NCBI GenBank assembly: GCA_963924565.1
Contig: OZ004611.1
Span: 24,428,001 to 24,492,000, forward strand
Source: Ascidiella aspersa
Taxonomy: Eukaryota
Direction: 5' to 3'
Length of the DNA: 64,000 bases
Each line of letters starts with the position of its first letter. Position 1 is the stretch's first letter. Both the position numbers and the translations under genes were made by a program. This document shows positions 11,193-58,829 of this stretch, in pieces. A model generated the notes under the pieces. It saw only the letters and a program-made list of their open reading frames with translations. It was not told the origin of the DNA and ran no database searches.

Positions 11193-14100
11193 ATGGTGCA
11201 TATGATGCATTTCTTTGTCGACGATCAACGTTCCGATAAACAACGTAAGTTTAAGTTTAAAATAAAAACTTATATCGCAAGTATGATTTAAGCATTTTAC
11301 AGACGTAATTTCGCAGTTTTTCCTGATTGAAATTAGTGGACGAGCGAAATGTGCTTTTTTATTAGGATGTTAAAGTTTACGGTTAGAATTTTATAAAGTG
11401 TTGTATGTAAGGTTGATGGCCTTAAGGTTTTACGTATACCAAGCAGCGACGTAATATATCCAGCTCAGCCGTCTTTGACACGATAATATGTATTAAGCAC
11501 AGGCGCCCAGCAAACTTGCAAGTTCATGTTTTACTTAACTTTTAAAAAAGTTGATTAAAGTTAACAAATTTGGCACTGGTCTAGAATCCTAGCACAGCGT
11601 TAAAACAACAATTATTACACAAATGCATATTATTGGTGTCGGTTAGTGTTTGTGTGAGGGTAAGTCAAGTTTTATTATTTAATAATATTGCTTAACCTAC
11701 CCAAACCCAAACAGTAACCCACACCCTAACCCAAATAATGTTCGTTGTGGTAGGATTCTAAACCAGCACTACAAATTTAAATGTGTTTTCACATGGTGGC
11801 TGGTAAGATTACTATGGCCAGCTCACGTATTGCCCTACGAGTCAGCAGTCAAACGCTGCACCGCTAATTGTTTTAACAATGCAACAATGTCACGTGTAAC
11901 TTTAAACAGAAGTGCGTCGTTAGCACTCGGACCGCCCACGCGGGCTTTTTATTAGCAATTGATGGCGCGCGCCGATCTCGTGGTTCGGAGTGCAACCGAG
12001 CCTCAATAAGTATAAATCAACACGCCAGTCGTATAATTGCGGGACAATATACAGACTACTGTGTGTTGTACTTGCCTTAGCAGACCAGCGAAGACGGGCA
12101 GGCTTAAGACTGTTACGTAAGCAGCTGTGGAGGCCGTTGTTGGGTTTTTAATCGATACGCTTGACTCATGTCGTTTGATTTTAATTAATCGGCCAGCGAC
12201 GTCTTTGATGTAGCTGTTCCGCGCTTGCGATTTTTTTAAATAGTTGTCGCATTCAAGTATTTTGTATTTTGTGAAAGTTAGAAATTACCGGAAAATACCC
12301 AGTTATCCGAATTAATTCTCACTGCTTGTTTGACGTGGTACTAACTGTGGTTTTCCTTAAATACGGTTACAGTTTATTTGTGTCTCTTGTCAGAATAAAA
12401 AAGCGGGAAACTACTTCTATCGAAATTCGGCAACACTATCTGTATTCCGGGCTTAAAACTAAATATCAAACTTTCTTTATACGTTTCCGTTTCCGTTTTG
12501 CCTGACATTGGCGATGATTGCAAATCTTTTATTTTTGTCTTACAGGCCGCGAAACCACGCCACAGGTTCAGATCGACCAGTTTATCCAGGAGCTTTCGGG
12601 CGAACGGCATGACGCCGAGGCTCCGCTCTTTTCCATGACCAGCAACGAAGACACCTGCTCGACCCTGATGCAGCCCGAGATTCCACCGACCAACTGCAAC
12701 GGCGACTTTGCCTTCCCCAGCACAACCGTACAAGAACCAGTCGCGAACGGCGGCGACGTTCAGACCCTGCTCTTCGGCCCGCCAATCTTGCAGCGCCAGT
12801 ACTCCATTTCAACAGTCCTGGAAATGATAGAGGACCACACGATTTCGGATCGCACGCGCGAAAACCAGAACACTCCAAGCCCTGCCGTAAATATACCCGA
12901 ATCCCAGAATCGCTACAGCAACTTCAGAGCCCTTCCCGCCGACTGCAAAGCTTCCTACGCTCAGCCGTCCTCCGACCGCTACGGTAATTCCCCGGCGCGC
13001 AGCGGGGTCTCCTGCAGCCCGCTGCCCCCGACCCCCTTCGCCAACTACCAGGACCTTTCCGACACCCCCAACTCATCACAGTTCGACCTCAATGAAGCCC
13101 CAAATGCCATCCTGGGTAAGTGTTTTTTTGCATATTAAAAAATTCGCTTTCAAATTATTTTTTGTTTTGATAAATTAATGCTAAATGTTATTTTCTGGTT
13201 GACTTGTGAGACGTTTTAAACAGGTCCATTTCGTAGAATTATGTCACATTTTATCCTCACTAGTCCTTTTTACCGCTTGTAAAATTGATTAGTCATTTAC
13301 ACCTTTGCCGGACAACGAACGACATCATAACTCAAAGGTTTCGATAAAACCGCCGCCGATTTCGATAAACCGCCGTTCCACCATATACAAAACAATTCAA
13401 ACGAAAAAAATAAAAATTGGCCTGAAAAATCACGCCGCCATTTTGATTTTCGTGCCGCCTTTTACGATCTCCTGCAGCAGCAGCAGTTGGCAAAAAGTAC
13501 GCCCACTCACAAAGGAACACGTGACGCTGATCAGAGCGACTGGCCTGCCTCGGCACGCCTACGCATTTGGCGCGCGCCCGTACTGTGCTGCTTCTGATAG
13601 CGGCAGGTGACATGTACAGTCGACTAATTGTTTCTCACGGGTTCGCCTGATCGTCGGCCCGCGCTTATTTACATTCGCCCTAACTCCCCGAAAACGGCCC
13701 TAGTCGGATCACGTTACGCGGGCCCGGGCCGCGGGCCGCTTTAAAATGGCCCAGACTGCCTTTTAAGCACGGATTTTTGCCCCGTTTGGCAAGTTTTTGT
13801 GGCCGCTTAGTGGCCACACTTTTTTCAGCACTGATTTGGCGAAAGCGGGTTGCAACAAAAAAACAAAAAAGCTGGAAACAGTCGCTTTTAAAGTGGCCCC
13901 GCAAAAACGACCATGTAATCGGGTTTAAAGCTCGCTTTTCGCGCCCGACGCTGCTTGCCCGGGCACGCCCTTGAGATTAGGCGCGTCCGGTTGTGAGTTG
14001 CATCATCACTCGTTATTGTTCCATAGGCCGATCGATTATTTTAGAGTAATCGCGCGGAAAGCGAAACACTTCAAAGAAACGCAATAACACGTGCCAAGCC

Positions 14101-14826
14101 AACGACGGCGGCCAAGTCCCTTTCATCTCTAATCGAATAACTGTTTACCCATTAGGAGCACGAACGTTTGTTTTGAACTTAAAAATAGCAAAGGTTATTT
14201 AAACGCTTCTTTTGTATTTTACAGAGGTCGACACGACGATTTTCGAAACAACGTGCACAGGAATCCAGGAGACAAGCCATACGCCGCCGCCTCCGTTCAC
14301 ATTCAACAGTAACAACAACCTCCAACAAAAACAGCACTGCGATTCTCCGGTATTCGGTTCGGCACCGCTCCAGTACGTCGAATTATCCCGTCACCAGGAA
14401 CCAGCACAATCCGACAACCACCACCGACTGCTCACGAACGCAAGCTCGTGCCCGAACTTCGAGCCGATCAGCTCGCCGGAGACTGTTTTCGACATGGACC
14501 TGGACTCGAGTCCGGGCGTGTCGCGGCGCACCGTGTCCTGCTCGTCGTACAGCCCCTACAGTCCGATCTCGTTGGAGCTGGAGGAGATCGCCAGCATCCC
14601 GGAGGAGGAGTTCAACAAGCTGGACCGCACCGATCAGCGTCGCATCCGAAACAACATCGCATGTCGCCACTCGCGCATGAGACGCAAGCAGAAGAAGATT
14701 GAGAATGAGCGGAAGGCTGTTGGCCTCGAAAACGAGAATATCGAGCTGCGCAAACAGATCAGGCGTCTCGAGCTCGAGTGCAGCCGCACCAAGGCCACGC
14801 TGCTGCGTCGTATGAGCGAAACGTAG
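11193..14826 (+). CDS. DDIT3-like: bZIP transcription factor A, DDIT3/CHOP-like with intact basic region; exons 11193..11244, 12546..13115, 14225..14826; ~407 aa
   Basis: All joins are GT-AG phase 1 and keep frame (CAAC|GTAAGT; TTACAG|GC; CTGG|GTAAGT; TTTACAG|AG). C-terminal RRIRNNIACRHSRMRRKQKKIENERKAVGLENENIELRKQIRRLELECSRTKATLLRRM. bZIP call is certain; first exon and CHOP orthology are less so. Confidence 0.85.
11572..11770. mobile_element. Merlin-like fold-back MITE in intron 1 of bZIP gene A
   Basis: GGCACTGGTCTAGAATCCTAGCACA...TGTGGTAGGATTCTAAACCAGCACT; perfect TSD ACAAATTT (11564-11571, 11771-11778); CCCTAACCC internal arm. Confidence 0.85.
12011..12122 (+). promoter_or_regulatory. 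Putative proximal promoter (P2) and ATG-less alternative first exon (~12040..12116) of bZIP gene A
   Basis: TATAAAT at 12011-12017; donor TTAC|GTAAGC at 12116/12117 overlapping a TTACGTAA palindrome; sequence similarity to the TATA and leader of gene B. Confidence 0.55.
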
Positions 14827-15900
14827 CTCTGCTCCAGCGCGAGAAAAACTCTTTTCGGCATCTGCTGCTGTGCGAGAAACTGAGACAGTTTTGCCTGCGT
14901 CCATGTACAAAGGACAAGTGCTGTAATTTTTCTTCCATCGCTATTAAGACCTAGAACCTGTTCTTCGGCATAGATGAGCAGTGTTCGCATGAAAGCACAT
15001 ATTTGCTTTTCCTGTTGTTTTCTATTTAAAACAAACGAATGACTTATTTTGTAAATCGCAGTAATCCTTTAACTTAACGAACACGCTGTTCTGAATTCAT
15101 ATTCATCTGTACAGATGCTCTATTTTCCCTATTTAAAATTTTCCCGCCTTTGATACTGTTTTTTGCTGTTTTGTTCTTTTTTTCATTCTTTCTTTTGTTT
15201 TGTTCCTGTTTGTTTTATGTCGGTATCAATCATTGTGAGTCCTGAGAACGAATTGGTAAGCGTAACAATCTCTATTCCACTGCGGCCTATCCAACTCCAA
15301 TCCAAAAATTAAGCCTATTAATTTTGTCGCAAACCTATAAAGTTGCGACCGACGAAATTCCATCCATCGATTTCAATCTATTTATATTTATACCTAGAAA
15401 ATGCGGAAAAATGAAGAAGGAGGGTTGTTTAGCGGATTTCGTAGTATTTTGTTGTCTTTCAGTTCCTTGAGGTGCCATATTGTGAATGTCGGGTGGTGGT
15501 GTTCTTGCCAAACTATATTCCTGTGATCGTTTTGTGTATGAATGAGAAACTTGCGCCAGTTTCCTCTGTAATTTTGGCCATTGCCTTGCAAGTTCCCTGT
15601 TTAATGTTTTTGTTTCTTTTTTGTTTTGTTTCTTTTTCGTGGTCTGTCAGCTGCTTGCAAAGGTTTGAATCTGGAGTGCCTTTTACCGATCACTGATTTA
15701 GAACGCTGGCGTTTCGATATCCCTGTGTCTGCTTGCTCTGCTACGGTCGTGCTGGCTGCGGCCGCTGGTTAGAGGGAAATTGTTTGTTTGTTTGTTTCTG
15801 TGTTTTTTGTATGTGTTTCTCCAAACGACGTGAGGCTGACACTTCCACTTCTTTTTCCTTTTCTTTTTCTTGTACTTATTTTTGTGAAAAAATAAACATA
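14827..15900 (+). other. Probable long U-rich 3' UTR of bZIP gene A
   Basis: T-rich tracts after the stop; AATAAA at ~15890 followed by a TG/T-rich region. Confidence 0.5.
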
Positions 15901-16284
15901 TAAAAACTCAAAACTTTATGTGCGAATTTTGATGTGTAAATTAAAAACAACAGGTTAGATGTCTGTAGGAAGGCATAAAGTTAACGAATGATAAGATAAT
16001 AAAGATTATTGAGATGCCTCTTAAAGACAATTTGCGTATTAACAAACATTACTAAAATAAATTGATACAAGTTGGTAAATTTGCCAAAATACTTTGTTTA
16101 TTGCGACGACAAACAGAAATTTGTTTTCTCTGCTTGTCTTGTATTGTATTATAGGTAAGCTCTCACGTGAAAGTTATAGGAGGGTGATTATAGTCAGCAG
16201 AAACTCAAACTATGAAATTGAGTTTGGCACAAAACTGTGAAATCATAAATGTTGTACTCCACGTTTTATAAATAGCCTTTGAGA

Positions 16285-16756
16285 CAGGGATGTCCAACAG
16301 GCGGCACGCGTGCCACATTTGGTAAAAAAAAATAATAAAAAATGAAAAAAATAAAATAAAAAATGGTACGCAAGCCCTTCCCAAAAAATACTAAGTTTGT
16401 TATACAGCCAATTGCCATTATTTGTTCACGATATAAAACAATCGCGGCACTCACGACAACCAACAATTACTTTTGATATAATAACATTATACTGTGTGGC
16501 ATTCACTATAGCATTCACATAATATTATATAGCTTGGTGTGAACAAACAAAAGTCAGCTCAACGAGAGACACTTTGATGTAGTGATGCGCATTTCTACTA
16601 GACAGTTTTTTTTTCAAGTTTAAATAAACGTTCTTATTTTTGGTAAAAAAGCGCTTTTATGATTAAAAAGAATTGGTTCGGTTACGAAACTTTGGCACGG
16701 GAAGAAGTTATAAGATAAAAATTGGCACGCCGGCATGGTTGAATTGGATACCCCTG
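16285..16756. mobile_element. Non-autonomous hAT-like MITE
   Basis: TIRs CAGGGATGTCCAA / TTGGATACCCCTG; TSD CTTTGAGA / CTTTAAGA (7/8); subterminal TGGCACG motifs. Confidence 0.8.
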
Positions 16757-17261
16757 CTTTAAGACAATTGAGAAGAAACGCTTGTGGATGATTTCCATGT
16801 AAAACAACAGGCATTGTAACATGACTGTACACTAAGATATTCTCACTGGAATACAGTTTTGCAGCATACAGGCGAATTCAAAATGGACGACGGGACCATC
16901 AGAGCAGATTGCAGGAGCGATAAGGCAGCTCGGCCTTAAAAGTACGTAATTACACATAATTTGCAGCACGCAGCGTCGGACGGTTAATAAGCGGGGCCAG
17001 TTGTGTCACCAACACGTCGCAACCCCGCTATTATTTGCCCATGTGTGTGTGTGTGTATTATTTGCTTCTTGTCGAATAGAGGGCACCTGTTGACCCGCCG
17101 CGAAAACATTAACGCCCGGCAAACAATGGAGACCCCGTGATGAGAAGCTCTGAGACCGAGCTGTTTTCGGCTTAAGCGCCTAATAAACCGACAAACTTAT
17201 ATCGCTTCTGTTGTCGGAACTTGCTTGACTGCTATTGATTGGCAGCGTGCTGACGATTGGT

Positions 17262-17669
17262 TATTGTTGTGAACAAGTTATTTTGAAATGAGTTGGGTCC
17301 AAGTCATGTCATTCGCAAAAAAACTTAAGTCCAAGTCTTTTTCAATACATAACAAGTCAAGTCCCAGTCCAACTCATAATTGGAGCCCAACTTCACGTCA
17401 AGTCCTTGTCATAAAAATAAAACTTAAACTATTACAACTGGTAAACTCGCCCGATTATGAGCAATAATTGAAGTAAAAAACATAAACGCAACTTAGTATC
17501 CAAATTGTTTTATGTGCAAAAATCAAATCCAATTTAATAAATAAATGCCTAATAAAAACATATATTTTAACCCACGTCATTTGTCCAAATGACTTAAATC
17601 AAGTCAAGTAATTTGAAATCAGTGACTTAAGTGCACTTAAATCAAGTCATTGACTTAATTACAACACTT
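17262..17669 (+). mobile_element. hAT-like CAAGT-repeat MITE copy
   Basis: TATTGTTGTGAACAAG...TTACAACACTT termini; TSD CGATTGGT / CAATTGGT (7/8); colinear with 22868-23269. Confidence 0.8.
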
Positions 17670-18732
17670 CAATTGGTAAGAAACACGAAAAAGTTTAGTA
17701 CAGCAATATTTTCCAAACTTTTTGGTTCCCGGGACGTTGCGAGCTTTTGTTAATTGCAGTCATTTAAGCACAGCAGCGTTTCTGTTTGCTTTAGACTTAT
17801 GCCCTTACTGCCATATGAAGCCATTTGGCACATATTGCGTAACAATTAAACACGAAACACGCTTTGGGGATTGAAACATATCTGGCCAGTAATGTTTTAC
17901 ACTGTTTGTTTTTTGTGATAAGTTAGCATGCCGAGAAAGTTACTCCTTGAACTTCATTCCCACTAACATTTGTTTTGGCGAACAATAAATGGATAATCTT
18001 CATTTAAGGAAAAAAAGGTCAATCACCAAACCGCCAGCATAAAATCGCCTCTCGTAAACCACTTTTTCACCAAAGTCAAGCTCAAGCATCAAGGGCGCGA
18101 GGGTTGGTGTTCTTTTACGCTTTAAGCTGCATTCAACAAAGGATTGAGACAAAGCACCTCGCTAAGTTGCAGCAAATGGTGCAAAGCTGCCAAAATAATC
18201 GCCCGGCGGGGTTTCACAATCAGCAGCCCTCCCCCCTATCTGGGTCGCGCAGGTTAAGTGTATTTCTGGACTCGAGTTACCGTTCGCCTTATCGCTCTGT
18301 CGAAGAACCGTAGCGCGGCAATAGAACCAGAAACCGTTTAGCTGTAAACAAACCGAGGGCGGCGGGGACAATGCGATATAAGTCCACGGCACTCGACTGA
18401 AATAGAAACGAGGCTACTTGTGCGCGAACCCGCCTCTGTAACGACTGTGACTCATCCCCAGCCGACAGAACCCTTTCATTGTGTGGCGAAGGTGAATTAA
18501 ATCGGGAGAATATGGTTGGAAGCTTTCGGCCCGCTGGATGTCTAGACTTTTTGCAGCTTTAGACAAAAACTGGGGAAATTCGGCAATCTTGCAAAAAAAT
18601 CTGCTGGAAACTCGGCAATTCTGCAAAGTTTGTATAAATAATATTTTTTTAGGTTTTCATTACTTCATGTTTTATTTCTATATATGTTGGCTTCGAACTC
18701 ATTTGCTTATTTCCGTCGTATTTATCTAAAAG

Positions 18733-19042
18733 CAAGGGTGGGCAACCTTTTAAACTTGTCGCGGCTGAAAACCAACCTCGGAAAAGTCTCTGTGGGCCGT
18801 CATAAATTTTAATTGACAATTATGCATTCAGATACAATGAGTTGGCGAAACTTCCGTTGTCGATAGTTCCCAGGGTAGACATTACGCTTTAGGGCTGAAA
18901 ATTTGTTGCATTTACCTATAGTAGAAATAGCCAAGCAACATCAGGAATAGCCTCTTACCCATTTAGTAAAGGAGGTGGTGGGTCGGATGATATTCATTGG
19001 CGGCCCGGATTTGAACCGCGGGCCGTAGGTTGCCCGACCCTG
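18733..19042. mobile_element. hAT (Charlie/Buster-like) MITE
   Basis: CAAGGGTGGGCAACC...GGTTGCCCGACCCTG termini with GGCCCG/CGGGCC subterminal motifs; degenerate TA-centred target site. Confidence 0.7.
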
Positions 19043-22000
19043 ATTTAAAGAAATCAAAACGCGATGTCGAAACAATGTAGCGTTTCAAATTGTTACATTA
19101 TGTCATGTGTTGATGCAGTGTGTGCCAACATATAATTATAAACAAATTCAATTTCAAAACATAAACAACAGCATACAATCACTCGTCTTAGGTTTTGGTG
19201 CTTTATAAAAGTGCAGCAAAATATAGAACTTAATGCGTTATTATATTCTCGTTAAACTAATCTGCCGTGCGTCCGAAAAATTACCTTTTCCTTGTGCTCC
19301 TAAGTAAAGATCTATGGCGATTTAAAACTCGTCAGGGCTTCTATGTAAACACGGCCGCAACAAATTTCGTAGTTAATCCGATGATTACACGACGCAAGTT
19401 GTCGCCGCCGTGTTTATTTGTACAAGTTCGTTTTACATAGAGTTCGACGAACGTTCGAGAAAGCGCTTTCAGCGGGCCCGGATAATTTTAGGGCGTTATC
19501 GACGGTGTCAAGTTCGCATGATTTGCAACTTGCAAAACTATACACGCTTGCGGCAGATTTGGCCAAATCCTTGCGATAATAAACAAAGGGGTTTTCCGAC
19601 AAGGAAATGCAACGCCACCACGTAGAAAGGGGAAAAGTGCCTTAAGCCAGTTAACGCAGTAAAAACTAAATCAGTCTTTTTTAGTGATATTAGTCACTAG
19701 GTCCAAAAAACACACACACAATATTTGGGCGAAAAAGGTGGACCCGACGATTTCGGTGCTTATCTGTGTAATCTGTCATAGAGGACGAAATCTAACTCTA
19801 TGAACAACACATATGGAAAAATATCATTTTATTTTTGTATTCTACTCGAACACAAAAAGTTTTATCTAGATTAGACAGTAGCCAATAGAGCAAAAATCAG
19901 ATTCATAAAGATCCTCAAATACCCATATAGCAAACAAATAGAAGCTGCACCCTTGTTGGGAACCACTGCCTTAACACAACGCTAATAAGGCCAAAGTCGC
20001 ATAAGGTTAAAAAAATAATATATAACAAATTAATAACGCAAAATGTCAAAAAGGCTCGGTTTTAACAGGTGTCCGGGCGACGGGCGGGTTTATAGCGGCC
20101 ATAAACGCGAGACTATTATGTCTCGGCAAAATCGAGAAAAGGGATTAAGTCTTCGGGTTTCACTCGGGCCGTAGGACGGGAATCCTATGGCGTTTTATCT
20201 CGATCGGATAATCATCTGTATATTGTCCCGTCGCGACGGGGCAATTGGCTTGCGCAGATATCGCGAACTTAAAATGTTAGGGTGGCGACGTGTCGCACAC
20301 TTGTAGATAAGTTTTAAGCGGCACCCGTTCAGGTGACCTTGGAGATGTATAAGAATAACCAAAAAAGGGAGTCGTTTCGACCTTGGCTCAGACCTGACAA
20401 GGCGTACAACATATTTTCGCTGCTTAGTTTTGTTATACCTTCACTACAAAAATACTACTGTAAATGCGTATAATAATCTATATCAGCTAATTCGATCTTT
20501 GGCTATTTAAGGATCGTAGCTTGTACGAAACACTGGGAAGGTAAGATTTTTGCCTTCGTACAACCTAAGTAAGCGTACAACCGTTTCCAATGTTTAACGT
20601 TTTTTTTTAACTTCACTATACAAATATGTTAACAGTAGGTTTTTGCATCCATGGTAAATATAAAAAATAATAATCCGAACACTCCTTTGCGCAAGTAACA
20701 ATTTTAGCGTCGGTTGTGTTGTACCATGCGGTTGATGTGAACTCCCTAAGTGTTCAAAACTAAATCTATCGCTTCGGCGATATGCAAATGAGAGTCGGGC
20801 GCCGCGTTCAGGGCGTAGTCTTTATGTTGCTTGCGGAGCCGAGTAATGGTGTATTGCTTTAAAACGCGCATGGTAAAGCTGAATGTTGCCCTTCAAATTT
20901 CAAACAAGGGTTGGCGCCACAATTCATTACAAAGCCGCCTCGTCGATAAAGCGTATAGACGGTACAAGCGCGCCCTGTGAAAGCTTTTCTCCTTTTAGCT
21001 CGTGTTTCCAAAGGCTTCCAAATAAGGATGTTGGATACACCTGTTTATGGCGATGCGTCAGTCCAATTAAGCTAACACTACTATTTGGCAACATGGCACT
21101 TTAAATGTGGCAAAACTGACGTGATGCGACAGATTGCGAAGCAAATCACCCAAATATCGCAAAATATTGGCTTAGAAGTAAAACAAGAAAAATTCAACTT
21201 TAATTCCTATCACTATATTCCTAAATGTATGGTATTTGGAAGCTTTAAAATGTCGAATTAGCTGTCAATTCGAAAGGTTTGAAACTGCTTGGGCCTCTAC
21301 TGCGAAACGTGCATAGACAAACTTTTCGATCCCTGTTAATAACCCGAATTAGCTGTATTACAATTAAAAAATCTCACAAACATAAAAAAAAATGATAAGA
21401 ATGTTTGCAAAAGAAAACTTCGCGTTAATAGTAAAGAGTAATTATTGTATGGACTAGCGTTTTTACGCATTATAATCTCCTTTCTCACTCAAGCAATAAC
21501 AACGATTCGCCATCCCTGATATGTTATGTGCCAGGGGTGACCAACACTCTTTAACCAGTTTTATGCAGCTCTTATGTTTGAGTTGCCACATTTTGAAAAA
21601 CTAAAAATCGCTAAATGTAGACAAACGTTGCCTTACATTTAAAAGCAATCCGCCAATTTCCTGGATCCCCGGTTTAGAAAGCACTGGTTTACGGCATAAA
21701 CCATCGCAAAGCGGCCGCGTAGGCGCCAGCATGTACCTTTGTGAGAATATCCATTGCCACCCTCATATTTGCCGAGCGGCGGTCGGTCGCGTGTAAGTTT
21801 GGAGTCGCTCTTTGGCACACTCCCTCCTGTTTTCGCGACGGCGCCAATTCAAAGGTCGTCATCGCGCAGTGACGTCACGAATTGTTGTTCGGCCTTCGAA
21901 AAGGCCCTCTTTCTCTTTGTTTCCCGCTTGTCGCGTGCGCCGGCCTAGTTTGGGGCGAAGGCGCGCTCGCCCCAAATCGCTACCTTTGGTAAAGAGTCTT

Positions 22001-22867
22001 GCGGTTGCGCTGCAAGTCTGTTTTCCTTAATATTGTTCTACGGCGCACCACTGCTAAATTCGATTTCAAAACATTAAGGTCTTTAACTCCATGCGATAAT
22101 ATTTTCCATTCATTTTTGTCTGATTGTTTTAGAGCGATAGACGCTTGCGCTTCACTTTATAAAATTCCTTACCTTAAACCAGTAATTTTCAAGTGTGCCT
22201 TGGTACATTTTGTAAATCAAAAAAAAAACTATTCGTGTTACATAAAGGCATTCGAGCAATCACAAGTGGACACCTACTTTCAATACGATAACCGGAAACG
22301 GTATTATTTGGAAGTTGTTAGGTGTTGTGATGTGTTAACGCGATTTTTTTATATGATTAGTGCGCTGCGAGATAAAATTATGCACCGGAAAATCACACGT
22401 TAAACCCCATCGCCGAAGAGTTCCGCTTACGACACGTGGATGATAAGTTGTACGAACTACCCTACTATCGCAACCCTTACAAAGCATATATATATTTCCC
22501 GAACGCCGAATTAAGAGAGTGGAGCCCCTCGTTTACTTAACAACCCGCTACATCGGAGTAGCGCTTCCAAACAAAAAGCCAAACACGGCCTTGGCGACGG
22601 TTCGAACAATAGATCGCTCGTGACTGGAAATTGCCGCTTTCGCTCTAAGCCTCCAGATCTAATTTCCCCTTTACGCCAATCACTGCCCAACGAAACGGAA
22701 CACTTCTATGGCCGCTATTAAATTGGCCGACATTGTGCCGTTATGGGGAAATTGCCGATTCGAGACAGGCTGGATATTAGATTTTTGCTCTTTTACAAAG
22801 GTCAAATCGCTTTTTGGACTTGAACTTATATATAACGTAAAACGAGGTATTTTTTGTGTACTTAAAG

Positions 22868-36200: not shown

Positions 36201-36204
36201 CCAT

Positions 36205-47269: not shown

Positions 47270-47561
47270 TGCCACGCCCAAGGAATTACGTAATTGTTAA
47301 ACCTTCTTCGCCAATTTAACAGCAGAAGCACGAACACAGTAGCACGTGAATATTAGGTAATCGCCAATTCCACGAGACGATTCTTACGTCAGCGGTATAA
47401 AGCCCTAATGCCAAACAGCTAGATTTAACAGAGACGCCGCCGAATTCTTTAGCAACAATAGTAGGCACAGTGAACGCCGCTTATTAGGCTTGCTGCTAGG
47501 ACTTCGTGTACTCGATATGGCTGGGGCGATGCCGGGGTTGACTGTAACAGAATTTCTGTTG
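47270..47561 (+). promoter_or_regulatory. Promoter-like motif cluster with TATA and a putative first exon; no long ORF downstream
   Basis: CCACGCCC (47272), TTACGTAA (47286), CACGTG (47343), TTACGTCA (47384), TATAAAG (47396), donor TTG|GTAAAT (47561). Confidence 0.45.
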
Positions 47562-49479
47562 GTAAATGGTTAATACCTAATTTGGAATTTTTACAAACAT
47601 TTTAGATCCATTGTGCTTTAGAAATGGTAACACGACGAGCATCTCTAGATTGTGGCATTGTTCACTAACAATGGATAGCGCTAAAGGGTTCGCTGTAGTT
47701 TACCCAACACATTAGGCTTGGTCCTATAGGGCGAATTTGATATCACCAGGGCTAAGCTGGGCCATGTTTGAACCAATAGTTACAAGTGAAACAAATAGCG
47801 CTCGTACTACTCACAAAATATTGCACATGTTTACATGTAATATGATAGCCTATCGGTATTTTTTTTACTTTAAAATGCGTTATTTTATCCAACAAATTTA
47901 CCGGATTTATTTAATATTGCTATAGTCCTGTTTTCGAATTTCCAAATAAGGCAATGTAGAAACGTGCTACGGAACCGACATAAATGACCTTTATACGACT
48001 TGTTTAGTCAAACCTGTATCAAAAATCTTTTTTCTTAGGGGTGATACTGAAAAAATCTACCCTAAATATGTATATTTATTTCATTTGTTATCAAACCTTT
48101 ATCCGTAAATGCGTGGATCAAGCTATACTGTTGTACATACTATCATTTCTTCCCCTCAATATAGAAATCTTGGTAATTGACCGTTCTGCCACCTTTAGGC
48201 GTTGGCCACTTTTTGTTGCTTTCCTGCTTTATTGTTTTGCTTGTCGCTTAATTACACGTAGTGTAGCGCTTGGCATACGACAGGCCGTAAGTATAGAGAT
48301 CCTGCAGTTTGGCGTAACAGTTGAACTAAAATTTTGCAAAATGGTACTTGTAAACCACATGGTCCAAGTGGCTTACATTTCTCCCATTGCGAAAGTTACC
48401 GCAATTCCAGTTTAACAACTTTTTGTGATTAAATTGCGTTGTTTTTGAATTTTTGCGACTGTAAACAGTTGGTTCGTGTAGAGGGGACTTTCCCTTAAGC
48501 GCTCGCTTTATGCTGTGCGAGAGAATGGATTTGCAAGTCAGACAAACAACAGCTGCTGAACATTCGGCGGATCTTAGATTGCGCAAAAGGGAAAATAAAT
48601 TCTAAAGTGGTGTAATGGACAACATCTAAAAATGTGCATTTATCTGTTTTAGGGGATTTTTTTGTACAGCTTCCAAACGAGTCACCAAACCACACAGCTG
48701 CTTGTAAATTTGTGTATAACAACTTTGGTAACTATTTAGGGAAACTAGTTTATTTTATCTTTAAATACGGTTTGTTCGGTGTGAACTTTGATTCAATAGA
48801 ATAATATGTCTCACACGTACTACTGACTAAGGTTAACTTTCGTAGAGCTTCCTATAATGTTAAAAAAAAGAAATAATTCGTATTTCAACGTCAAATGCAC
48901 TTTATAGCATAAGTTTTGAAACAAACAGGTTTATATACACCTTCAAAACGTAGTGATACATTTAAGTAATGTGTACTTTCCATGCATATAAATTATTTTT
49001 TTATTTTACAGGGTCTAAATGTACCGTACTCAGATTTGTAGTAAATATTTATTTTGCATGCACAAAAAATACAATCTTTTTAGCATTTAATTTGTCATAT
49101 GTAAATAAAAGGCTAGAAAGTCTGAACGCTTATCTATAGGCTAGTCAAGCGACCATAAATTGCACAACATTGTTATAATATAGAAAATCGCGTCGGCCTA
49201 GAGCAAACCAATCATCGCGATCTCAAAACTAATATCTCACTGACTGATATTTATCTAAAGAGGTCGCTTTTCAAACAACTTGCCATGTTTGGGTATTTTC
49301 TCAGTCCAAAGTTTTCGCCCGCAGGGTAGCGCTAGTGACCCTAATTTAAGACGCTTACTGGTTACGTAAGGGTGAAACGAGATTTTCGTTCGCCTGATTC
49401 GCGAGTGGCGCAATCTATGTTTGGGTTCGCTCGATTTGCTGAAACTAACGTTGGTAACCCGATACAGAGGGGCAGGCGG

Positions 49480-51990
49480 TAAAAGCGCTGCATTTGGTAT
49501 CGAGCGGCAAAGCGTTGGGTTTTGCAACATGGCTTGTGAAACTTTATTGTGTCGCAACGTATTTTTTCCTCAAACCTGAAGGCGTTGTAGGTTTGCCGTC
49601 CCAATGAAATTAACTCCGGGGACACGGTGGTGTTTCTATGGGTTAAAACTTTGAAGTCGGAATCCGGGTTTTAGATAAGAATTTAAATAAACTTCGTAAC
49701 CTTTAGCCTTTTACTCATAGGCGTTCAACAATTTAGCAATAGAATCATCAAGGCAGTCAATAGTATAGAAAATATATTCGGTCACAGTAATGCTACAACT
49801 GTATACTGTAGACCAAAGTAAAACTTAAAAAAGGAGGAAAACAATGGTAATTCGTACCGTGCAAACGCTTTAAACCACATGTTCACGTATTTTAAATATT
49901 CTTCCACGTCTCAATACAAACACTCCAGCCAAAACAGTACGTTATCCTCCATTCGAACAAAGTCCAGTAAATACCGAGGTTATACAAACAAACCTTAAAA
50001 AAGGTCGTATTGCTTTAAATCTCTTGCAAGGCACAGAGCCGGGTCGTTATCCAAACATAATCACTATATTATTGCTTCATTTAGGATGACGACATGTGGC
50101 AAAAGCCCCTATTCACCTTTCGCTTGAATCTCGTTCCGTTTAATCAATAACAACATTTTTTAGCAATAAATATGCAAAACGATCAATAAAAAGGCTTATT
50201 TTCGTAGGTCTATGGCAGGGCAACATACGGCCCGCGGCAACATTTTGCCACATTTCGCTACTAAAATCATTACACTTATGATACTTTTAATAGCGAAATG
50301 TTGCTATCTTATAACGTCAAATTCCAAACAAACTGATTTTCGGTTTACTAAGTTCTGCACCTAGTTTATTCTTTAAGTCGGGAAGTAATCAGTATGTTTA
50401 ATGTGCAATGAAAGTGTGGCCGTATTTAAAGAGTACCACATTAGCCGCCATTATGCGACAAAACATGCAAGATTTGGCAGTACTTAATCCGGCCCGCCAA
50501 GTACTCCATTTTCCCATATCTGGCCCGCCAACCGGGTTAAAAAACTCCAAAAACCCCAAATGCTTTTGAATTTTAACCCCATGCGAGCAAAGCGCTGCTA
50601 CAAAGCAAACGTTGTAGCGTTGTAGCTGACTAAGATATAGTTTCTGACAATATTGAATTGTGTAACAATTCGCAATTCCACCGAAAACAACAAAACATTT
50701 TATCGTGTTACATATGTCAGAAAAATATTGTGTATTGCTACCTGCCGTACTACATTCCTAGTTTAGTAAACCAAAATAACGAATGTTTTTGCAAAACGTT
50801 TTTATTTAGTGTCGACGAAATAGATGTAAAACGTCGGGCTGCATTCGGTATCCAGTGGCAAAGCATTAATTTTAAAATGACTGGTGAAACGTAATGGTGT
50901 CGCAACTTTTTTACCTGAAACCTGAAGACGTTATAGGTTCGCCGCATCTTAACTACGGGGACACGGTGGTTTTCTAGGTAAGAACGGAAAACAATATTGT
51001 CTTTTAGTCGGAAACCTGATTTATAGGTAAAAAGGATTCAAATATACCTTTTGGCGTCGGGAATTTGGAAAGCAGAAAACCATGATTAGTGCGAAAGATG
51101 TCAAACTATAGACTAATATTTTCATAATAAGCGTTCATTAATTTACCAGGATAAATAAAAAGACCTTCAATATCCCGGTCTAAAACGCCCGGATATTTAA
51201 TAGCAAATATATTGCGTTACGGTAATACTCTAAAATTGTAACTTGTTGTTACAACTATAAATAAGTGGGTAATAAAAATAATTTGAACCGTACAAACTAG
51301 ACCCCTGCATGTTTACGTATTTCCATCATTTATCTCAATACGAACACTCCAGCCAAAACAATACGCTATCCTCCATTCGAACAAAGTCCAGTAAATACCG
51401 CGGTTATATAAACAAACCTTTAAAAGGTCGTATTGCCTTATATCTTGCGCGAAGCACAGAGCCGGGTCATTGTCCAAACACAATCGTTATTTTATCACCG
51501 AATTTAGGATGACGACATGATGCATAACGCTGTTTTTACCTTTCGCCTGAATTTCGTTTAATCAATGACGAAAGAATTTAGCAAGAAAAATACACGACGA
51601 TCATTTGAGAGGCTGATTTTCGTCTATAGGCTTCTGGTTTACGTTACGTAATAAATTGAAGAGCCGAAAACCCAATATGCTTTCGAATTTGAAACTTAAA
51701 ACATACTTATCAAGTACATAAAAATGTACTGTTTTTGCTGCAAAGGTCACATTTTGTAATGATTCGCGATTCCACCTTAAGCAACAAAATTTATCGTGTA
51801 TTGCAAAAATTATCGTGTATTGTATTCTAGAAAAATATTGAGCATTGCTACTTGCCGTTCTATATGTTGAGTTTAGCAAACCTTACGAAAGCGAGCATAT
51901 ATTTACCGACGACGAAAGAGAATGTAAAACGTTTATATGCGTGAGAAATGTATAAAATCATAAAAATGTAAAACCTGAATGAAAAGCAAG
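49480..51990. repeat. Diverged tandem duplication, two full units and part of a third
   Basis: 49480-49650 ~ 50828-50975; 49876-50160 ~ 51306-51570 (includes a near-identical TCCTCCATTCGAACAAAGTCCAGTAAATACCG core); 50670-50830 ~ 51765-51890. Confidence 0.85.
50213..50535. mobile_element. Decayed hAT (Charlie/Buster-like) MITE present in only one duplication unit
   Basis: GGGCAACATACGGCCCGCGG start; CCGGCCCGCC and TGGCCCGCC subterminal motifs; absent from the second unit. Confidence 0.55.
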
Positions 51991-52538
51991 ATAAAGGCAC
52001 CAGAAGCGAGATAGAAAATAAGACCGAGGTTAATTTAAAAAAAAAATGAAAAACAAAATACAATCAACAAAAATAAACGAAGGTGTCACTCACAGAAGAC
52101 GTATACCCATTAACGGAAACGTTAAACTAGGATTTCTTAAACTTTTTAACACGGACCCTCTAACAACTTTATTTGGTTAAAAGCGTGGGGTCGACATGGA
52201 ATTTTCCGAAATGACGCCATAATATGACGTTATACAACAAGCAGACTTCGGAAAGCTGTTGTTTTCAGTCCAACAAATGTGAAAAAACTGAAATGAAGTC
52301 AAATTACATTTAACGAGAAGTCACCAATGCGTTTTGTTTATTTAAACTCTCTTTTTTTATGTTGAAAATAGATTTTAAATAGTCTTTCATTGACTTCTGG
52401 AACTAGTCAACGTACCCCAAAGGGTCCATGGACCTCTCAGTTTAAGAAATCCTGCGCTAAACAGGCAAAATTTATTTGCCAATAAATACTTGTCCAGTTC
52501 ACGCATCGAAATCGCGCTTTCGACAAAAGCTGTTAACG

Positions 52539-54297
52539 TCACTTCTTTCCTTTGTTCACACTCCGAAAGAAACTCTTTTTGGCCGCGTCCACCTTTACCT
52601 CAAGTTCCAAGACCAAGCGACGGAGGGATTCGTTTTCCTTGGTCAGTTGGTAGACTTGATCGTTCAGCCAGTCCCGCTTGCATTTCATCTTTTTCCTGGA
52701 CTCCTTACAGGCGGCGTTGTTTCGCGATCTTTTTAGCGCGTGCCACGGTGATTTTTCTGCTACGGGAGATTTTGATGTGGACGGAATGTCAGCTGTGAGG
52801 TCGACTATCTCGCTGCGAGGCGAAGCGACGTTTTGGGTTTGGATTTTGGCTGGTTGAGTCGCCGATGACGCGGCAGTGTACGGATTGTGTTCCGTATACA
52901 CCTAAATGCGGAAAGCTATTCATAATTTTAAAAGCTATTTCATAAGACTTTTTTTGATACTTAAGCAGTGAAGTGGCTGGGTAACTTGCTTGTTCGATTT
53001 AACGAATTCGCGACTTTTCCGGCAAAAAGTACGGCCGTCCGACCCGCTATAAAATATTTTTATTATCACAGTCAACTAAGATAAATTGATTTTCACGTAA
53101 TTTTGTCAAAATTTCCTAAAAGTTTTGAACGTTAAGCTACTACATCCAGTTGTTAGTTTACTATACTTAACAAATTTCCCAAGAAAGGAATAAATCACAT
53201 CGCAAAACTATGGTTCAAATGCCTATTCAGTATAGTATCAGATTACCATCAGTCAGACGAGCACCGATAGCTCCGCTCGGGTATTTTATTGCCAATATTG
53301 TGCGACATGACATCCCTATTTCCATGTTAGCATCCTATACAAAGGCTTTAAAAGCGTTTAAATTGTCAAGCAATAAAAATGTAGGAAAATGTTTTTGGGT
53401 CTGGCGGACAGTGCCACTGACAATGATCGACTCCGCAGATACGTAAACACGATAAAACATGATGTATTGTACTTTATACTATAAATGCCATTAAATTAAA
53501 TGATGAGAAACCGACAAAAGGTAAGGTTGACAAGCAATAAAAAGCAACAAGTGCTTGCCCTAAAGCCGTATTTTCTGTAATACCGCATGTGGCCTGTTAG
53601 TCATACACTCATAAATCATTATTTTTTAAATGATTTTTTGTAAATGCACTAGAGATACAGAATACCAATGAGCAGTAAACAACTAAACATAACAATAAAA
53701 AGTGCCAGATTACGAACCGTGGCTTAGCCTTAGCCTACCTGTGGCTGTGGAAAAAGGAAATCCTCTAAACAAAATTCAACAAACTGCGTGTTTTGATGCA
53801 TCGCGTCTGCGCAGCTCGATAAACCAGAAGTGGAAATTTTGCCTTGGTTAAGCTTAGCGTGATTTGATCTTTGGAATTGGTCAGTGGGTTTGCTGTTGTG
53901 CAAATCTTGAAACTCTGTATTAAAAAACTTTCGTAGCGTTTTTGCATATTATTAAAATACAGCAATATTTTGCTAAAAATATTTCGTATACAGCAATTCA
54001 GCAGCTACACATTATACCTTGTCTTAAGTATGCTGTACTTTCCATAAATTGCCCTTGCAGAGGTGCCTCCACTTCAATGTAACTGTTGGTCCCGGTTACT
54101 TGAGGTAATTCCCCGTGTAAAAACTCACTTCTAAGTCTTGTGGTCGAACAGCTTGCATCATCAAAAGTTTGCATTTGTTGGGGAGAAAATGCGCTGAAAT
54201 AACTCTCGGTAAACGGAGTTTGCATAGGGGAACTAAACTGATCGTCACATTTTAAGGCTTCAATTGCCTTTTGCAGCGATGATCTACGCCTTTTCAT
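52539..54297 (-). CDS. DDIT3-like: bZIP transcription factor C (short DDIT3/CHOP-like paralogue); exons 54297..54018, 53914..53739, 52901..52539; 272 aa
   Basis: CAAG|GTATAA (phase 1); AATACAG|AG; middle exon open (EFQDLHNSKP...FVEFCLEDFLFPQPQ); CAG|GTAGGC (phase 0); CATTTAG|GTG. bZIP KRSRNNAACKESRKKMKCKRDWLNDQVYQLTKENESLRRLVLELEVKV. Same intron phases as gene B. AATAAA (- strand) at 52471-52476. Confidence 0.85.
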
Positions 54298-54539
54298 AGT
54301 CTAATATTAGCAAAAGCAGATCTACAGTAACTTTTACAGACTTAAAACAAGTTAAACTTTTACAAACATATAACTGAAAAAGCAGTAATTGGTTTTAAAT
54401 TGATATCTCTATAATAGGAATAAAATATTGGAACCTATCTAAAAACTAATCTCTTTTTTTCAAGTAGTTAAATATACAGCATAGCTATCGATGTCTATTT
54501 GCAACTATCAAATGAAACACTATTCTGCCTCACGTTCAG

Positions 54540-55340
54540 AACTGTTGCATCATAAAGCGGATGGTATTGCTCAACAATTAACAAAAAACAAAGTTTTATT
54601 ACAACAGAGAAAACGGTTTTAACTTAGAGTTTCAATATTTTGTTAATATGAACCAACGTCGTTAAGGATACTAAACTAAACTTGATTTTCTAACTTCTGT
54701 CAAATCTTTTTTCGTTTTTTCGAAACTAGCACGTGGTAATTCCCGACATGTGGTTACGCTAAATACTACATTTAGGAGAAATAAAACGTTAAATGATGCA
54801 ATGGTCGTGGGACGCCGGAGCTATTACTGTACTTGCAACCAAAGTTTTAAGGCTAATCTCCTAGGCGTAAGCATATCAACAAACAAAAATCGCTATTCCT
54901 CAATAATTTCGCTTGAAGAACAAGCATGACACGATAGATTTAACTACGAGGCAACTTTTCCGCTGAGTTTTGTGGTTGGAAATTCTCGTTCTCAATACAG
55001 AATATAGAAAATTCGGTAATATCCAAAGTTAACCTATTGAGTCAGCACGTTTTCAAAAACAGGATGAGTGTTTGAGAATCCGGTCTAACGCTATAATGCC
55101 GATAGTTATTTCTGCAAAGCTGCGATAATCGTAGTTGCGAAACTTGTTTATTCTGTTTCGAAATTTAAAGTAGAATTTATTTCAATACCATATAGTTCTC
55201 TACGACTAGTCGACTACCTAACTTTTCTGTTGTGTATAACGTAATGCTAGCAGCAGATTCAACCAATCCGAAGGTATGGACGCCACAAATGATTCTGCAA
55301 AACATCTTTAGTTTCGCCAAATTCAAACATTACGTCATGT
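54540..55340 (-). promoter_or_regulatory. Upstream region of gene C with stress-response motifs
   Basis: TTGCATCA (54545), CACGTG (~54730), TGATGCAAT = ATTGCATCA on - (54794-54802), TGAGTCAGCA (~55038), TTACGTCA (~55330). Confidence 0.45.
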
Positions 55341-56575
55341 CAGAAACTTGTATGTGTTTAAGTGGCGATAGAGTGGCGCAATACATTTGTGCAGGTTTTA
55401 GCTTAGCGGGGTTTAAGCGGATTATGTACGGATATTGTTTTTTTACGGAGTGTACCCGGGGTGGCATAAAAAGTTACCTTGAATAAAAACTGGCCACAAA
55501 ACCACTACACCTATATGTTTTAACGATTCTGTGTTTTTGATTTAAAAGCGCCGATTTTAGTGCAGAGTTGGCAAATAGATAACCCATCACCCAAAAATAA
55601 AAATGCACCAAAATTATTGAATTGCTTAGGCTATAATACAATTCAGGCATTTTTTTCGATAGATGATAAATACAGAGGTAAATGTTTCCTAGGTAAGTTA
55701 GCGATTAACTAAGTTCGTAAATTTGTAACACTATTTTATAAAAAAAATCTTACTGAAAATCAAAAGCTCGTGTTTTTTGTACAGGCACTTATTTACTGTC
55801 ACGTTTTCCGTTATGATTTTTTTCAATTTTACGTGCAGGTCGTGATTGTTTTTTTTTTCTGTGGCTCTGTTTGCCATTTATCGGTACATGTGTCACGATT
55901 GTGAACATTTCGACGTTATTCACCCTAGATTTGTTTTCTGATCCCACGAATAGTAGCCAAAAAACCTCACTTTGAAGTACATTTTTTACAGTTTTATTTG
56001 AAACTTCGATTTTTGCCAAGTAGTACATCGCGAAAAGGCCATTGCAAGATTATGTACATAAACCACATACGAATAAAACGTGAAAGCAATGCTATATTAT
56101 GTTTATAGCAGGGTTTTCGTTTTTGTAATTTTTAGGACGTTTTTTTTTTGTTTTATAAAACTTGCAATGACACAAAAAACGCTGTACACACGCAAAACAA
56201 TCAATCGTTAGTTTGTTCCAACACAAAATTCCTGATAAAAACAGGACCAGCTTTTTGAGGCGTAAAGGCCAATGTTCGCACAGAAGCGAAAAAGAGAAGA
56301 AACGATCAGTTATCAATGCAAAGATATGAACTTCAGCAGAAAGATAGGGGAACGAAGAGATAAATAGCTATAAAAATTGAAACTTTACTACAATTTTACT
56401 AGTAATTGTCAAACAAACGTGCGTGTCAAATAACAGTAACCAACAATTGCCGTTGAAACGTTATTGAAATACCCAAAAATGCATGATACCAATTTATCAA
56501 GCAATCGCCGTGTGAAGAGTCGGAGCCAAGAGAAAAAACATAAGCAAAGTAGTTGCTTTTACTTTCTCCATAATC

Positions 56576-58749
56576 TTAATTTGCGGCGGGTTTCTTGCCG
56601 GTCATACGCTGGAGAAGGGTCTCCCGCGTCTTCTTGACTTCGACCTCGAGATTTGCAATCATCTTTCTCAGGTCAACGTTTTCGGTCGCGAGGCGCTCGA
56701 CTTTTTCCTCAGCTTCCATCTGTTGGGTCTTCTTCTTTTTACGCGACACTTTGCAGGCGGCGTTGTTGCGCGTTCGCTTACGCGTGTAAGAAGGGGTGCG
56801 GGTCATTTCCGGAAAGGTCATTGTTGAGGTGGACGGCGCCTCGCTGGTCAAGTCTATGGTTTCCGCTTGGGCCTCGTCGTTTAATTCTTCCTGGATGTCA
56901 GAAATTTCGACGGTGGACTCAACCACGATGCAGGTGACATTGTTGGATGTCAGTACCTGGATATGCAGAGGTTAATTAAAATACTGCTAGCCATCTTTAA
57001 TAAAAAAAACATAAAAATGCAGTTGCCTATACTAAAACATTCATACACATATCTGTATTTAAAACATATTGACTGTGACTTATTTTGTGTTAGTTGTTTC
57101 AAGTTTAACGTGTGTTGTACTAAATAATTTAAAATGTCCAATATATATTAAATCACTAATAAAAGTTGTTTGACAAAAATGGAATGCGAATAGTTACCTC
57201 TTGTTGTGGAACATGGAGGTTATTGAGCAGGGAATCAATGAGCAAGGTCTGCTGAGGCGCGGAGGTACTTTCTGATATTGTGTAGCTGTCAGAAACAGCG
57301 GCGGCGGTGGTGGTGGAGCAGGTCTCCTCGTTGGTGGTGCTCACAACACTGTTGTTGTTGCTGTTAGTGTTCGCTTCACTTTGCGATTCTAGAATGTAAG
57401 TAAAATGAGTTAGTAAAGGCTGACAACCTATCGCTAACAAAATCAAAACAGTTAACAGCATTCCAAGACAGCACATGCACACATATAATATCGGTATAGG
57501 TTTTTGTTATATTAAGGGTTATATTAACAATAATTTACCAGCTTCTGAGCATCCAACGGCGGCAAAGGTCTCCTGCAGCAGGGCTTCAATGTCGACTTCA
57601 TAGTTCTGATGAGCCGTAGCGTCTTCAGATGCAGATCTTGCCCGATTTGTGTCACTGTGCATTGCAGCCTGTGACAGATCGCTTGGCCAGGAAATGTTTC
57701 TATGTCTCGCCACAGAGGAACTGGGCCCTTCAAATTGGGAATAAGAAGGGGAGGGATGGAGTAGGTATTCACTACCGTCTGTGAACGGAGTCGAGATCGG
57801 GGAATCTTGAAGATCAGTGTCTTCTATTCCAGTGTTACCCAGAACTTCAATAGCCATGCTGAGAGAAGTCTGTCTTCCCATGCAGGGAGCAACGTCAAGG
57901 TTCTTGTTGATTGGGAAAGAGGAAAAGTTTTGCTGGGAAGCAGCAGGGAGGGGAGACATGTGGAGGTCCTCCAACTCACTGTAGGGAGATGGCGCCCAGG
58001 AGCCACTGTACATGCGGGTCCGGTCAGAGTCTGTTTTCTTTCTCTCCGATACAGAGTTCAGATCGTTAATGTTGCCATTGTTCGGGATAAAAGAGCAAGC
58101 CAGGTCGTCAGGGGTGTTCCAGTCCATGTCAGAGTTGTGAAAGTTATCATCTGTTAATATGCAAAAAATTCTTAAAATACATCGAACTTGTGTAACATCA
58201 TAAGTTAAAGTGAAATATCAAGACAAGTAAAATAAAAAAAGCAAACTGTCAAAACGATTAATTTGTTACACTTATTAGTTAATAGGCAACTCATTATTTA
58301 AAGATTGATTTCATGATTACCTGGCATGGCGTTACCCACAATACTGGGTAAAAAGGGGTAAGTGTCCCCCAAGGGGTCCATCCGGTCCTGGATGGGGGAA
58401 GTCGGGTTGAGGGGACTTCCCTGCCCCATAGCGACGTCGCTCTTCAACATTGTAGGTGTTGGCGTGACGCGAGATGCGCTGAGCATTGGATTTCGATGCA
58501 ACCATTCTGAAATGACAAGTGTGGATTATTATAAATAGGCGCATAAATTATGCAAACAGTAACAAGATGTATTCGATGTAAGTAGGGAGAAAGCAACAAA
58601 TTTAAAACCAAACAACGCAAACTCGTCACGTACCTCAAAAAATCAAAGAGGCTTAAACAACAACAGAGTCAGTCACGCGTGCCTAAGTCGTTATTTAAAG
58701 GAAAAAGAGATGTACCAGCAGCGGCGTGCGGTATCCTCTCGTCAATCAT
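56576..58749 (-). CDS. DDIT3-like: bZIP transcription factor B (DDIT3/CHOP-like, intact basic region); exons 58749..58716 (tentative), 58506..58321, 58150..57539, 57388..57198, 56956..56576; up to 467 aa
   Basis: GT-AG joins in phases 1,1,1,0 keep one frame. C-terminal YTRKRTRNNAACKVSRKKKKTQQMEAEEKVERLATENVDLRKMIANLEVEVKKTRETLLQRM. True start uncertain: ATG 58749 via weak donor GTACAT, or ATG 58486 or later if donor GAG|GTACGT at 58634 is used. Confidence 0.87.
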
Positions 58750-58829
58750 GTTTCGTATTTGTCGATTTTGCTACGCAAAGTGTCAGCGAGTCGCTTCCCT
58801 TTAGTCCGACTTCGCTGGTTCTCCACAGC

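Follow-up and report, generated by a model that had tools for sequence, protein, structure and literature searches.

Among the effectors of the integrated stress response, CHOP, the product of DDIT3, takes a central place. Its proposed counterpart in flies, Xrp1, was to our knowledge long thought to be specific to Drosophila. Published work states that CHOP has no recognisable Drosophila orthologue (PMC6946401), and PAR-L, an ancient subfamily of basic leucine zipper (bZIP) proteins, has been reported lost in humans (PMC4736632). Here we describe three bZIP genes, named A, B and C, in a 64,000-nucleotide window of the Ascidiella aspersa genome (308.6 Mb in 75 contigs; assembly GCA_963924565.1, contig OZ004611.1, G000:C5:24428001-24492000). 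Positions below are those of the window. With good confidence, we take the window to hold the whole complement, three genes, of the ascidian-type orphan bZIP family, a family best placed in the PAR-L class and predicted to act as dimeric DNA-binding factors.

An earlier reading of this DNA from its letters alone (the sequence-only reading) had proposed three bZIP paralogues in which the basic region, N-N-x-A-C-[RK]-x-S-R, is intact, and this proposal held. The basic-region strings were located at 14650-14676 on the plus strand (gene A) and at 56741-56767 (gene B) and 52695-52721 (gene C) on the minus strand. Each open terminal exon matched the Pfam domain bZIP_2 (PF07716), with E values of 1.2e-10 (A), 7.8e-11 (B) and 3.6e-8 (C) and scores of 33.8-42.3 bits against a cut-off of 22.3. 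The basic region, N-x2-A-x3-[SC]-R, is followed by a heptad leucine zipper whose ungapped register is that of C/EBP. All three genes keep every DNA-contact position of the C/EBP/PAR-type basic region (R-x-R-N-N-x-A-C-[RK]-x-S-R), with Cys at the position where C/EBP has Val and PAR has Ala. Their zippers carry Asn at the second 'a' position (a2), and the g-e' pairs of gene B are attractive.

The closest relatives of these genes are ascidian. We searched 1.84 billion representative proteins exhaustively with HMMER, using a profile of four available bZIP domains, and obtained 1568 matches at E <= 0.001. Named ascidian proteins made up the top tier: the Phallusia mammillata Orphan bZip-2 transcription factor protein (CAB3224146.1; P0003 below) and "transcription factor protein" CAB3254096.1, Ciona intestinalis Q4H324 and Q4H323/Q4H322, the uncharacterised Clavelina LOC143470842 and LOC143470492, and Styela LOC120341964. 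Genes A, B and C are new members of this known but unstudied family; a literature search found no paper joining "orphan bZIP" with Ciona, and the ESM Atlas returned generic bZIP_2 clusters only. The ascidian proteins fall into an A-type, ending in RRMSET or similar, and a B-type, ending in ..MTGK... Both types are present in Ciona, Phallusia and Clavelina, and Styela has one named gene. The Ensembl ids of the two Ciona proteins are ENSCINP00000002543 and ENSCINP00000002531. The Ascidiella genes share with them the NNxAC[RK]xSR signature, the zipper and the C-terminal end, together with the start of the protein (MVHM.H in A, MLS. in B), an internal RQxS...EV[IL] motif and a length of about 350-490 aa. 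In contrast, identity to the Phallusia proteins is 29-40% outside the bZIP domain, and the A. aspersa genome has an extra B-like copy, gene C, in which the family likeness is limited to the motif and the last exon. The internal motif was confined to those ascidian A- and B-type proteins that could be matched by name and to the members of their clusters; it was not seen in the proteins of Lingula, the snail or Priapulus. Judged by sequence, Phallusia Orphan bZip-2 and Ciona Q4H324 are the orthologues of gene A, and Phallusia P0009 and Ciona Q4H323, which represent the second ascidian type, are those of gene B.

A six-frame search of the genome with the family profile identified A, B and C as the sole members. 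The next-best matches were the genome's own C/EBP (46.8 bits) and C/EBPγ (39.3 bits), followed by PAR and Jun; XBP1, CREB, CREB3-like, Fos/ATF3-like and ATF4 genes were also present, and no further DDIT3-like candidate was found in the genome. The description of the cluster as an expanded family needs qualification: there are three genes, but the split between A and B is old, being shared by Ciona, Phallusia, Clavelina and Styela, and only the split between B and C looks recent. The linkage of A and B at one locus is probably old as well, since the Clavelina A- and B-type genes have consecutive accession numbers on one contig.

We built a maximum-likelihood (ML) tree from an ungapped block of 64 columns and 74 rows under LG+C20+F+G4, with support given as ultrafast bootstrap/SH-aLRT (the Shimodaira-Hasegawa-like approximate likelihood ratio test). 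Gene A fell in the A-type clade (98/89), grouped with Phallusia P0003 and a further A orthologue, P0001 (95/81). Genes B and C fell in the B-type clade (95/86), which comprised 16 family rows and the DDIT3 zipper; they were sisters (95/47), with C on a long branch. A-type and B-type sequences joined at 99/76. The orphan bZIP family took a nested position among the rows of PAR-L (94/90); the main PAR-L clade, made up of unnamed matches, Lingula and snail, had a support of 98/86. Genes A, B and C lay outside both the clade of C/EBP and C/EBPγ (98/89) and the clade of PAR and NFIL3 (99/99). Thus, the robust grouping with PAR, NFIL3 or C/EBPγ that the sequence-only reading had itself named as contrary to its proposal was not seen.

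The second tier of HMMER matches consisted of invertebrate proteins with the string KNN[IV]AS (snail, Lingula, Priapulus and firefly), equivalent to the subfamily called PAR-L in Jindrich & Degnan 2016 (PMC4736632). FBpp0083114, which represents Drosophila in this subfamily, is Xrp1, as its bZIP string agrees letter for letter with the D. melanogaster Xrp1 line in PMC6946401. Like PAR-L proteins, the ascidian proteins have two Asn in the basic region, lack the PAR-type extended basic region (as defined in PMC4736632) and end shortly after the zipper. Unlike most of them, which have Ser after the Ala, they have Cys; sea-urchin PAR-L, with NNKAC, carries the same Ala-Cys as the ascidian genes. 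In scores of the zipper alone, 42/54 family members were higher on the PAR-L profile than on that of C/EBP. A difference from Xrp1 is that no AT-hook was noticed in the A, B and C proteins, for which no formal search was made. On these sequence comparisons, the orphan bZIP family is best placed in the PAR-L class that includes Drosophila Xrp1.

Family labels from the stored text of Additional file 1 Table S1 of PMC4736632 were not used, as those of the 26 Ciona rows are shifted relative to the sequences. The two orphan bZIPs are labelled SMAF and LMAF there and an ATF4-like sequence is labelled NFE2; the human list in that table does not contain DDIT3. Ciona sequences for mapping interaction data were absent from the supplements of PMC4335062.

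How the family relates to CHOP is a separate question. According to one reading, A, B and C are co-orthologues of vertebrate DDIT3/CHOP that kept the ancestral DNA-binding basic region, CHOP having become shorter and its basic region having decayed. We give this reading a chance somewhat short of even. It is compatible with the PAR-L placement if DDIT3 is a derived PAR-L/B-type gene, and the position of tunicates as the sister group of vertebrates counts in its favor, as does the lack of another DDIT3-like candidate in the genome. In our analysis DDIT3 was represented by one human sequence, the 43-residue zipper only, and its basic region and tail were compared by eye. The zipper, as given in the sequence-only reading, is identical to a stretch of the 80-residue human DDIT3 peptide in Supplementary file 1A of PMC5349851. 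The ungapped identities of 19/43 given for A and B were correct when recomputed; gene C has 12/43. For the family as a whole the median was 15 and the maximum 21 of 43, compared with 13 and 17 for C/EBPs. An unnamed clade of P0127, P0034 and P0029 shares 21/43 residues with the CHOP zipper, and in P0048 Gly takes the place of the first Asn of the basic region. Raw zipper identity discriminates poorly, 19/43 being only slightly above the C/EBP maximum of 17/43.

Profile scores separated the candidates more widely. Against zipper hidden Markov models (HMMs), the DDIT3 zipper scored 45.6 bits on the whole-family model and 46.9 bits on the B-type subset, compared with 32.1 bits for C/EBP plus γ, 31.4 bits for the γ-like model, 31.4 bits for the A-type model, 28.6 bits for C/EBP proper, 23.4 bits for PAR-L and 17.0 bits for PAR-like sequences. 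Against their own profile, true family members left out singly reached a median of 43.7 bits. When the DDIT3 zipper was shuffled fully, scores were about 0 bits; when the heptad register was kept, they averaged 4, with 23 as the highest. The difference between family and C/EBP scores was +13.5 for DDIT3; it was positive in 52/54 family members and negative in 28/28 C/EBPs, all of them below -8. In the ML tree the DDIT3 zipper was placed within the B-type clade (95/86, as above). DDIT3 and the ascidian proteins share the zipper register, Asn at a2, acidic 'g' and basic 'e' positions, and a bZIP domain in the last exon at the extreme C-terminus. A, B, P0001 and DDIT3 also have in common an unusual Thr at d4 and Arg at d5 followed by Met, shortly before the end of the protein.

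Several results stand against CHOP orthology. The approximately unbiased (AU) test accepted a grouping of DDIT3 with C/EBP (p = 0.50; log-likelihood [lnL] 0.29 higher) and with PAR/NFIL3 (p = 0.40; cost 2.3 lnL units); a tree with 43 columns and one sequence is powerless to place DDIT3. Pairwise scores against DDIT3 did not differ significantly between the family and C/EBPs (p = 0.21), and zippers that share partners can converge. The basic region of CHOP, disrupted by Pro and Gly (SGHSPARAGK; PMC5349851), has none of the Asn-Asn, Ala and Ser-Arg contacts, whereas A, B and C keep all of them, which the sequence-only reading takes to be the ancestral state. The sequence-only reading had put the ascidian proteins at 272-467 aa. 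We found 407 aa for A, 449 aa for B and, in the predicted model, 186 aa for C, so that A and B are 2.4 to 2.7 times as long as CHOP (~170 aa). That reading had also aligned a Ser-Pro stretch upstream of the basic region of A with CHOP; both A orthologues examined (P0001 and P0003) lack the motif, SYSPYSP, and the similarity looks like chance.

Synteny with DDIT3 was not found either. In human, DDIT3 has MARS1 and DCTN2 as neighbours. In A. aspersa these genes lie on chromosomes other than that of the window (C5): C8 and C6 carry the tRNA-synt_1g (MARS-type) genes, and C1 carries dynamitin. Gene order is heavily rearranged in tunicates, and the absence of synteny is for this reason weak evidence. 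A DDIT3 chain was not found in the Protein Data Bank, nor was DDIT3 among the best 150 matches of the exhaustive profile search. One sequence, P0078, shares three 5-mers with the CHOP zipper; a word-indexed search with P0078 returned only P0078 itself.

Of the original CHOP interpretation, then, the zipper resemblance proved to be position-specific in the profile scores, but orthology was not borne out by the AU tests or by synteny. Among the profiles compared, that of the B-type zipper came closest to the vertebrate DDIT3 zipper, and the sequences make the family a candidate pro-orthologue of DDIT3. We judge true orthology to be possible, at somewhat less than an even chance. A broader proposal would unite the ascidian orphan bZIPs, invertebrate PAR-L (including Xrp1) and vertebrate DDIT3/CHOP in one ancient family. 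In that case CHOP would be a truncated B-type protein whose basic region decayed after the tunicate-vertebrate split, and the sea-squirt genes would represent the ancestral DNA-binding state. We offer this proposal tentatively, with the balance leaning against it.

A second reading makes A, B and C a fast-evolving, tunicate-specific offshoot of C/EBP that is unrelated to PAR-L and Xrp1 and tied to DDIT3 only through a common C/EBP origin. Some of the observations that favor it also weigh against the PAR-L placement. The AU test accepted a grouping of the family with C/EBP (p = 0.33). Full-block profile scores hardly separate PAR-L from C/EBP for B and C, gene B scoring 57.3 on C/EBP and 58.0 on PAR-L. 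The best solved-structure matches were C/EBPβ and C/EBPα, at 51 bits with the profile compared with 30 for NFIL3, and the basic region has the RxRNNxA.[RK]xSR form of C/EBP and C/EBPγ. Further points against the preferred reading as a whole are that the deep relationships rest on 64 columns only, with weak deep nodes, that the amphioxus PAR-L-like row P0080 fell outside the same supported clade, and that gene C may be decaying. On the other side, the free ML tree keeps the genes outside C/EBP and C/EBPγ and nests them among PAR-L, the tree constrained to C/EBP is 8.6 lnL units worse, most family zippers favor PAR-L, and the Ala-Cys signature recurs in sea-urchin PAR-L. We therefore regard a C/EBP offshoot as unlikely.

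Canonical C/EBP membership was rejected. In A, B and C, Cys replaces the C/EBP-defining Val of NN[IV]AV[RK]KSR, the clade of C/EBP and C/EBPγ excludes them, and each group prefers its own zipper profile (52/54 family members and 28/28 C/EBPs). Moreover, canonical C/EBP and C/EBPγ genes are present on another chromosome of the same genome, at G000:C3:20247278-20247427 and G000:C3:20260146-20260301, 13 kb apart on the same strand. The Ciona C/EBP and C/EBPγ have consecutive Ensembl protein ids, and this pair is probably an old linkage too.

That A, B and C are divergent PAR or NFIL3 members is very improbable, and membership in that group was rejected: they share its two-Asn signature, but the PAR/NFIL3 clade excludes them, their profile scores are lowest for PAR/NFIL3, and they have neither the extended prefix of KD.KYW..R.KNN.AAKRSR nor the zipper intron, whereas the genome's own PAR gene has both the KD.KYW prefix and the intron.

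With the PAR-L placement as the preferred reading, the basic regions and zippers suggest how the proteins might work. Because the contact positions are intact, Asn occupies a2 and the g-e' pairs of B are attractive, A, B and C should bind DNA as dimers. They would act as sequence-specific transcription factors on C/EBP/PAR-like half-sites, dimerising as homodimers or with partners of the C/EBPγ or ATF4 class. The Cys sits at the position that sets half-site preference (Val in C/EBP, Ala in PAR), and a related but distinct specificity, perhaps redox-sensitive, is predicted for this reason. A role in stress would follow by analogy with Xrp1 and CHOP only. Across the window, matches to the C/EBP-ATF response element (CARE; TGATGNAAY) and to the endoplasmic reticulum stress response element (ERSE) were at chance level, 6 found and 5.5 expected for the former and 2 found and 2.8 expected for the latter. 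Two C/EBP-ATF-type elements, TGATGCAAC at 54544-54552 and TGATGCAAT at 54794-54802, lie 250-500 bp upstream of the gene C ATG; the window-wide count is that expected by chance.

The spliced gene models were searched exon by exon, with no joined protein used as a query, and stranded reads of one RNA run of the same species label were aligned to 52801-58800. Gene A lies on the plus strand, 37 kb from B and C, which are on the opposite strand. Its first coding exon (11193..11244) starts with the ATG at 11193 and is followed by a GTAAGT donor at 11245 in phase 1; the N-terminus, MVHMMH, aligns from residue 1 of Phallusia P0003, with 8/17 residues identical. Coding exon 2 (12546..13115), with an acceptor and a donor in phase 1, holds the conserved RQYSIS..LEMI motif common to ascidian A- and B-type proteins. 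A tblastn search with P0003 residues 110-242 matched it at 12707-13090, and it had no Pfam domain match. The last exon (14225..14826) holds the bZIP domain and the stop codon. It was matched by P0003 residues 270-460 at 14242-14823 (tblastn) and was 41% identical to P0001, the sole relative found in a word-indexed protein search, which has the same RRMSET end. The three exons have consensus splice sites and agreeing phases, encode 407 aa and are colinear with P0003. The structure of gene A is thus supported by colinear homology to Phallusia Orphan bZip-2 and by its splice sites.

Gene B is expressed. Minus-strand transcription was seen at an RNA depth of 4-23, reaching 8-23 over 56001-57000, where all reads were minus-strand sense, and stranded reads confirmed all three introns (56957-57197, 57389-57538 and 58151-58320). 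The first coding exon (58321..58509, minus strand) has its ATG at 58486 and is joined to the next by the 58321/58150 junction (10 reads). Some transcripts reach to at least 58749 upstream; others are spliced in at ~58509. Coding exon 2 (57539..58150) has RNA junctions on both sides and holds the motif RQTSLSMAIEVLG. Coding exon 3 (57198..57388) is bounded by the junctions 57388/57539 (8 reads) and 56953/57195 cut +3 (5 reads), with the phases checked. The last coding exon (56576..56956) contains the bZIP domain and the stop codon, and the 3' untranslated region extends to about 56000. The acceptor of the bZIP exon is in phase 0 in B and in phase 1 in A. The frame from the ATG at 58486 runs through the confirmed junction into the main open reading frame (ORF), with an in-frame stop upstream at 58526-58528. 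Over their whole length, the 55 aa encoded from 58486 align with residues 1-52 of P0009, the B-type protein of Phallusia, whose residues 60-339 match 58130-57189 (tblastn). Since the frame crosses the confirmed junction and these 55 residues align with the Phallusia N-terminus, we assign gene B four coding exons and 449 aa, starting at 58486. An in-frame GGG insertion after 58041 was seen in 8/12 RNA reads, along with many single-base differences across gene B; these probably reflect allelic differences between individuals.

The leader of gene B varies. An upstream ORF of 70 codons (58332..58544, minus strand) overlaps the start codon of B out of frame. Only those transcripts carry it that include 58510-58749, and splicing in at ~58509 leaves it out; RNA depth over 58401-58800 was 2-3.4. 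The overlap in the longer leader is a suggestive feature with regard to stress-type control. Further upstream (60269..62409, minus strand), the overhanging parts of reads that break off at 58509/58511 match the window at 60269 and 62380. Therefore, gene B has two alternative leader exons, or promoters, near ~60269 and ~62380.

Gene C is a young, divergent and nearly silent or weakly expressed tandem copy of B. Its two-exon model, with consensus sites and 186 aa, is a prediction. The putative first coding exon (54100..54297, minus strand) has an ATG at 54297, a GTAAC donor and the motif RRSSLQKAIEAL, and showed no coverage in the one RNA run. The last exon (52539..52901), with the bZIP domain and stop codon, had an RNA depth of 0.2. 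Across the gene, the run gave a depth of 0-1 and no junction reads. Minus-strand-sense RNA at a depth of ~1 was observed at 53601-54000, inside the predicted intron of gene C, and may come from an exon of C that the model misses or from a transcript unrelated to the gene.

The ~37 kb between gene A and genes C and B (15000-52400) contains no convincing coding ORF. This is unusual for a compact 308-Mb ascidian genome, and the stretch may be a regulatory landscape or encode non-coding RNA. The cluster is flanked by two single-exon ORFs, one at 1828-2745 on the plus strand for a sulfotransferase of the Sulfotransfer_2 family (306 aa), and one at 4582-5961 on the minus strand for an F-box protein with a weak Arf-like C-terminus (460 aa). 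Intron 1 of gene A (11567-11767) and the region upstream of gene B (60855-61025) have short repeats of 22-41 bases in common, at 80-95% identity and in both orientations; these may belong to a small dispersed repeat. Another stretch of the same intron, 12009-12116, had no significant match to the gene B leader.

If the ascidian orphan bZIPs do link CHOP, Xrp1 and PAR-L, the origin of the crippled basic region of CHOP could be dated to the vertebrate stem. Xrp1 and CHOP would then be true relatives and not analogues; PAR-L would not have been lost in vertebrates, and CHOP would not be a vertebrate invention. Ciona and Phallusia would provide experimental chordate systems with a DNA-binding version of the protein, in which the original function of CHOP and Xrp1 could be tested. 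Should the link prove false, the cluster would still stand as the correct annotation of an unstudied, tunicate-wide family of transcription factors.

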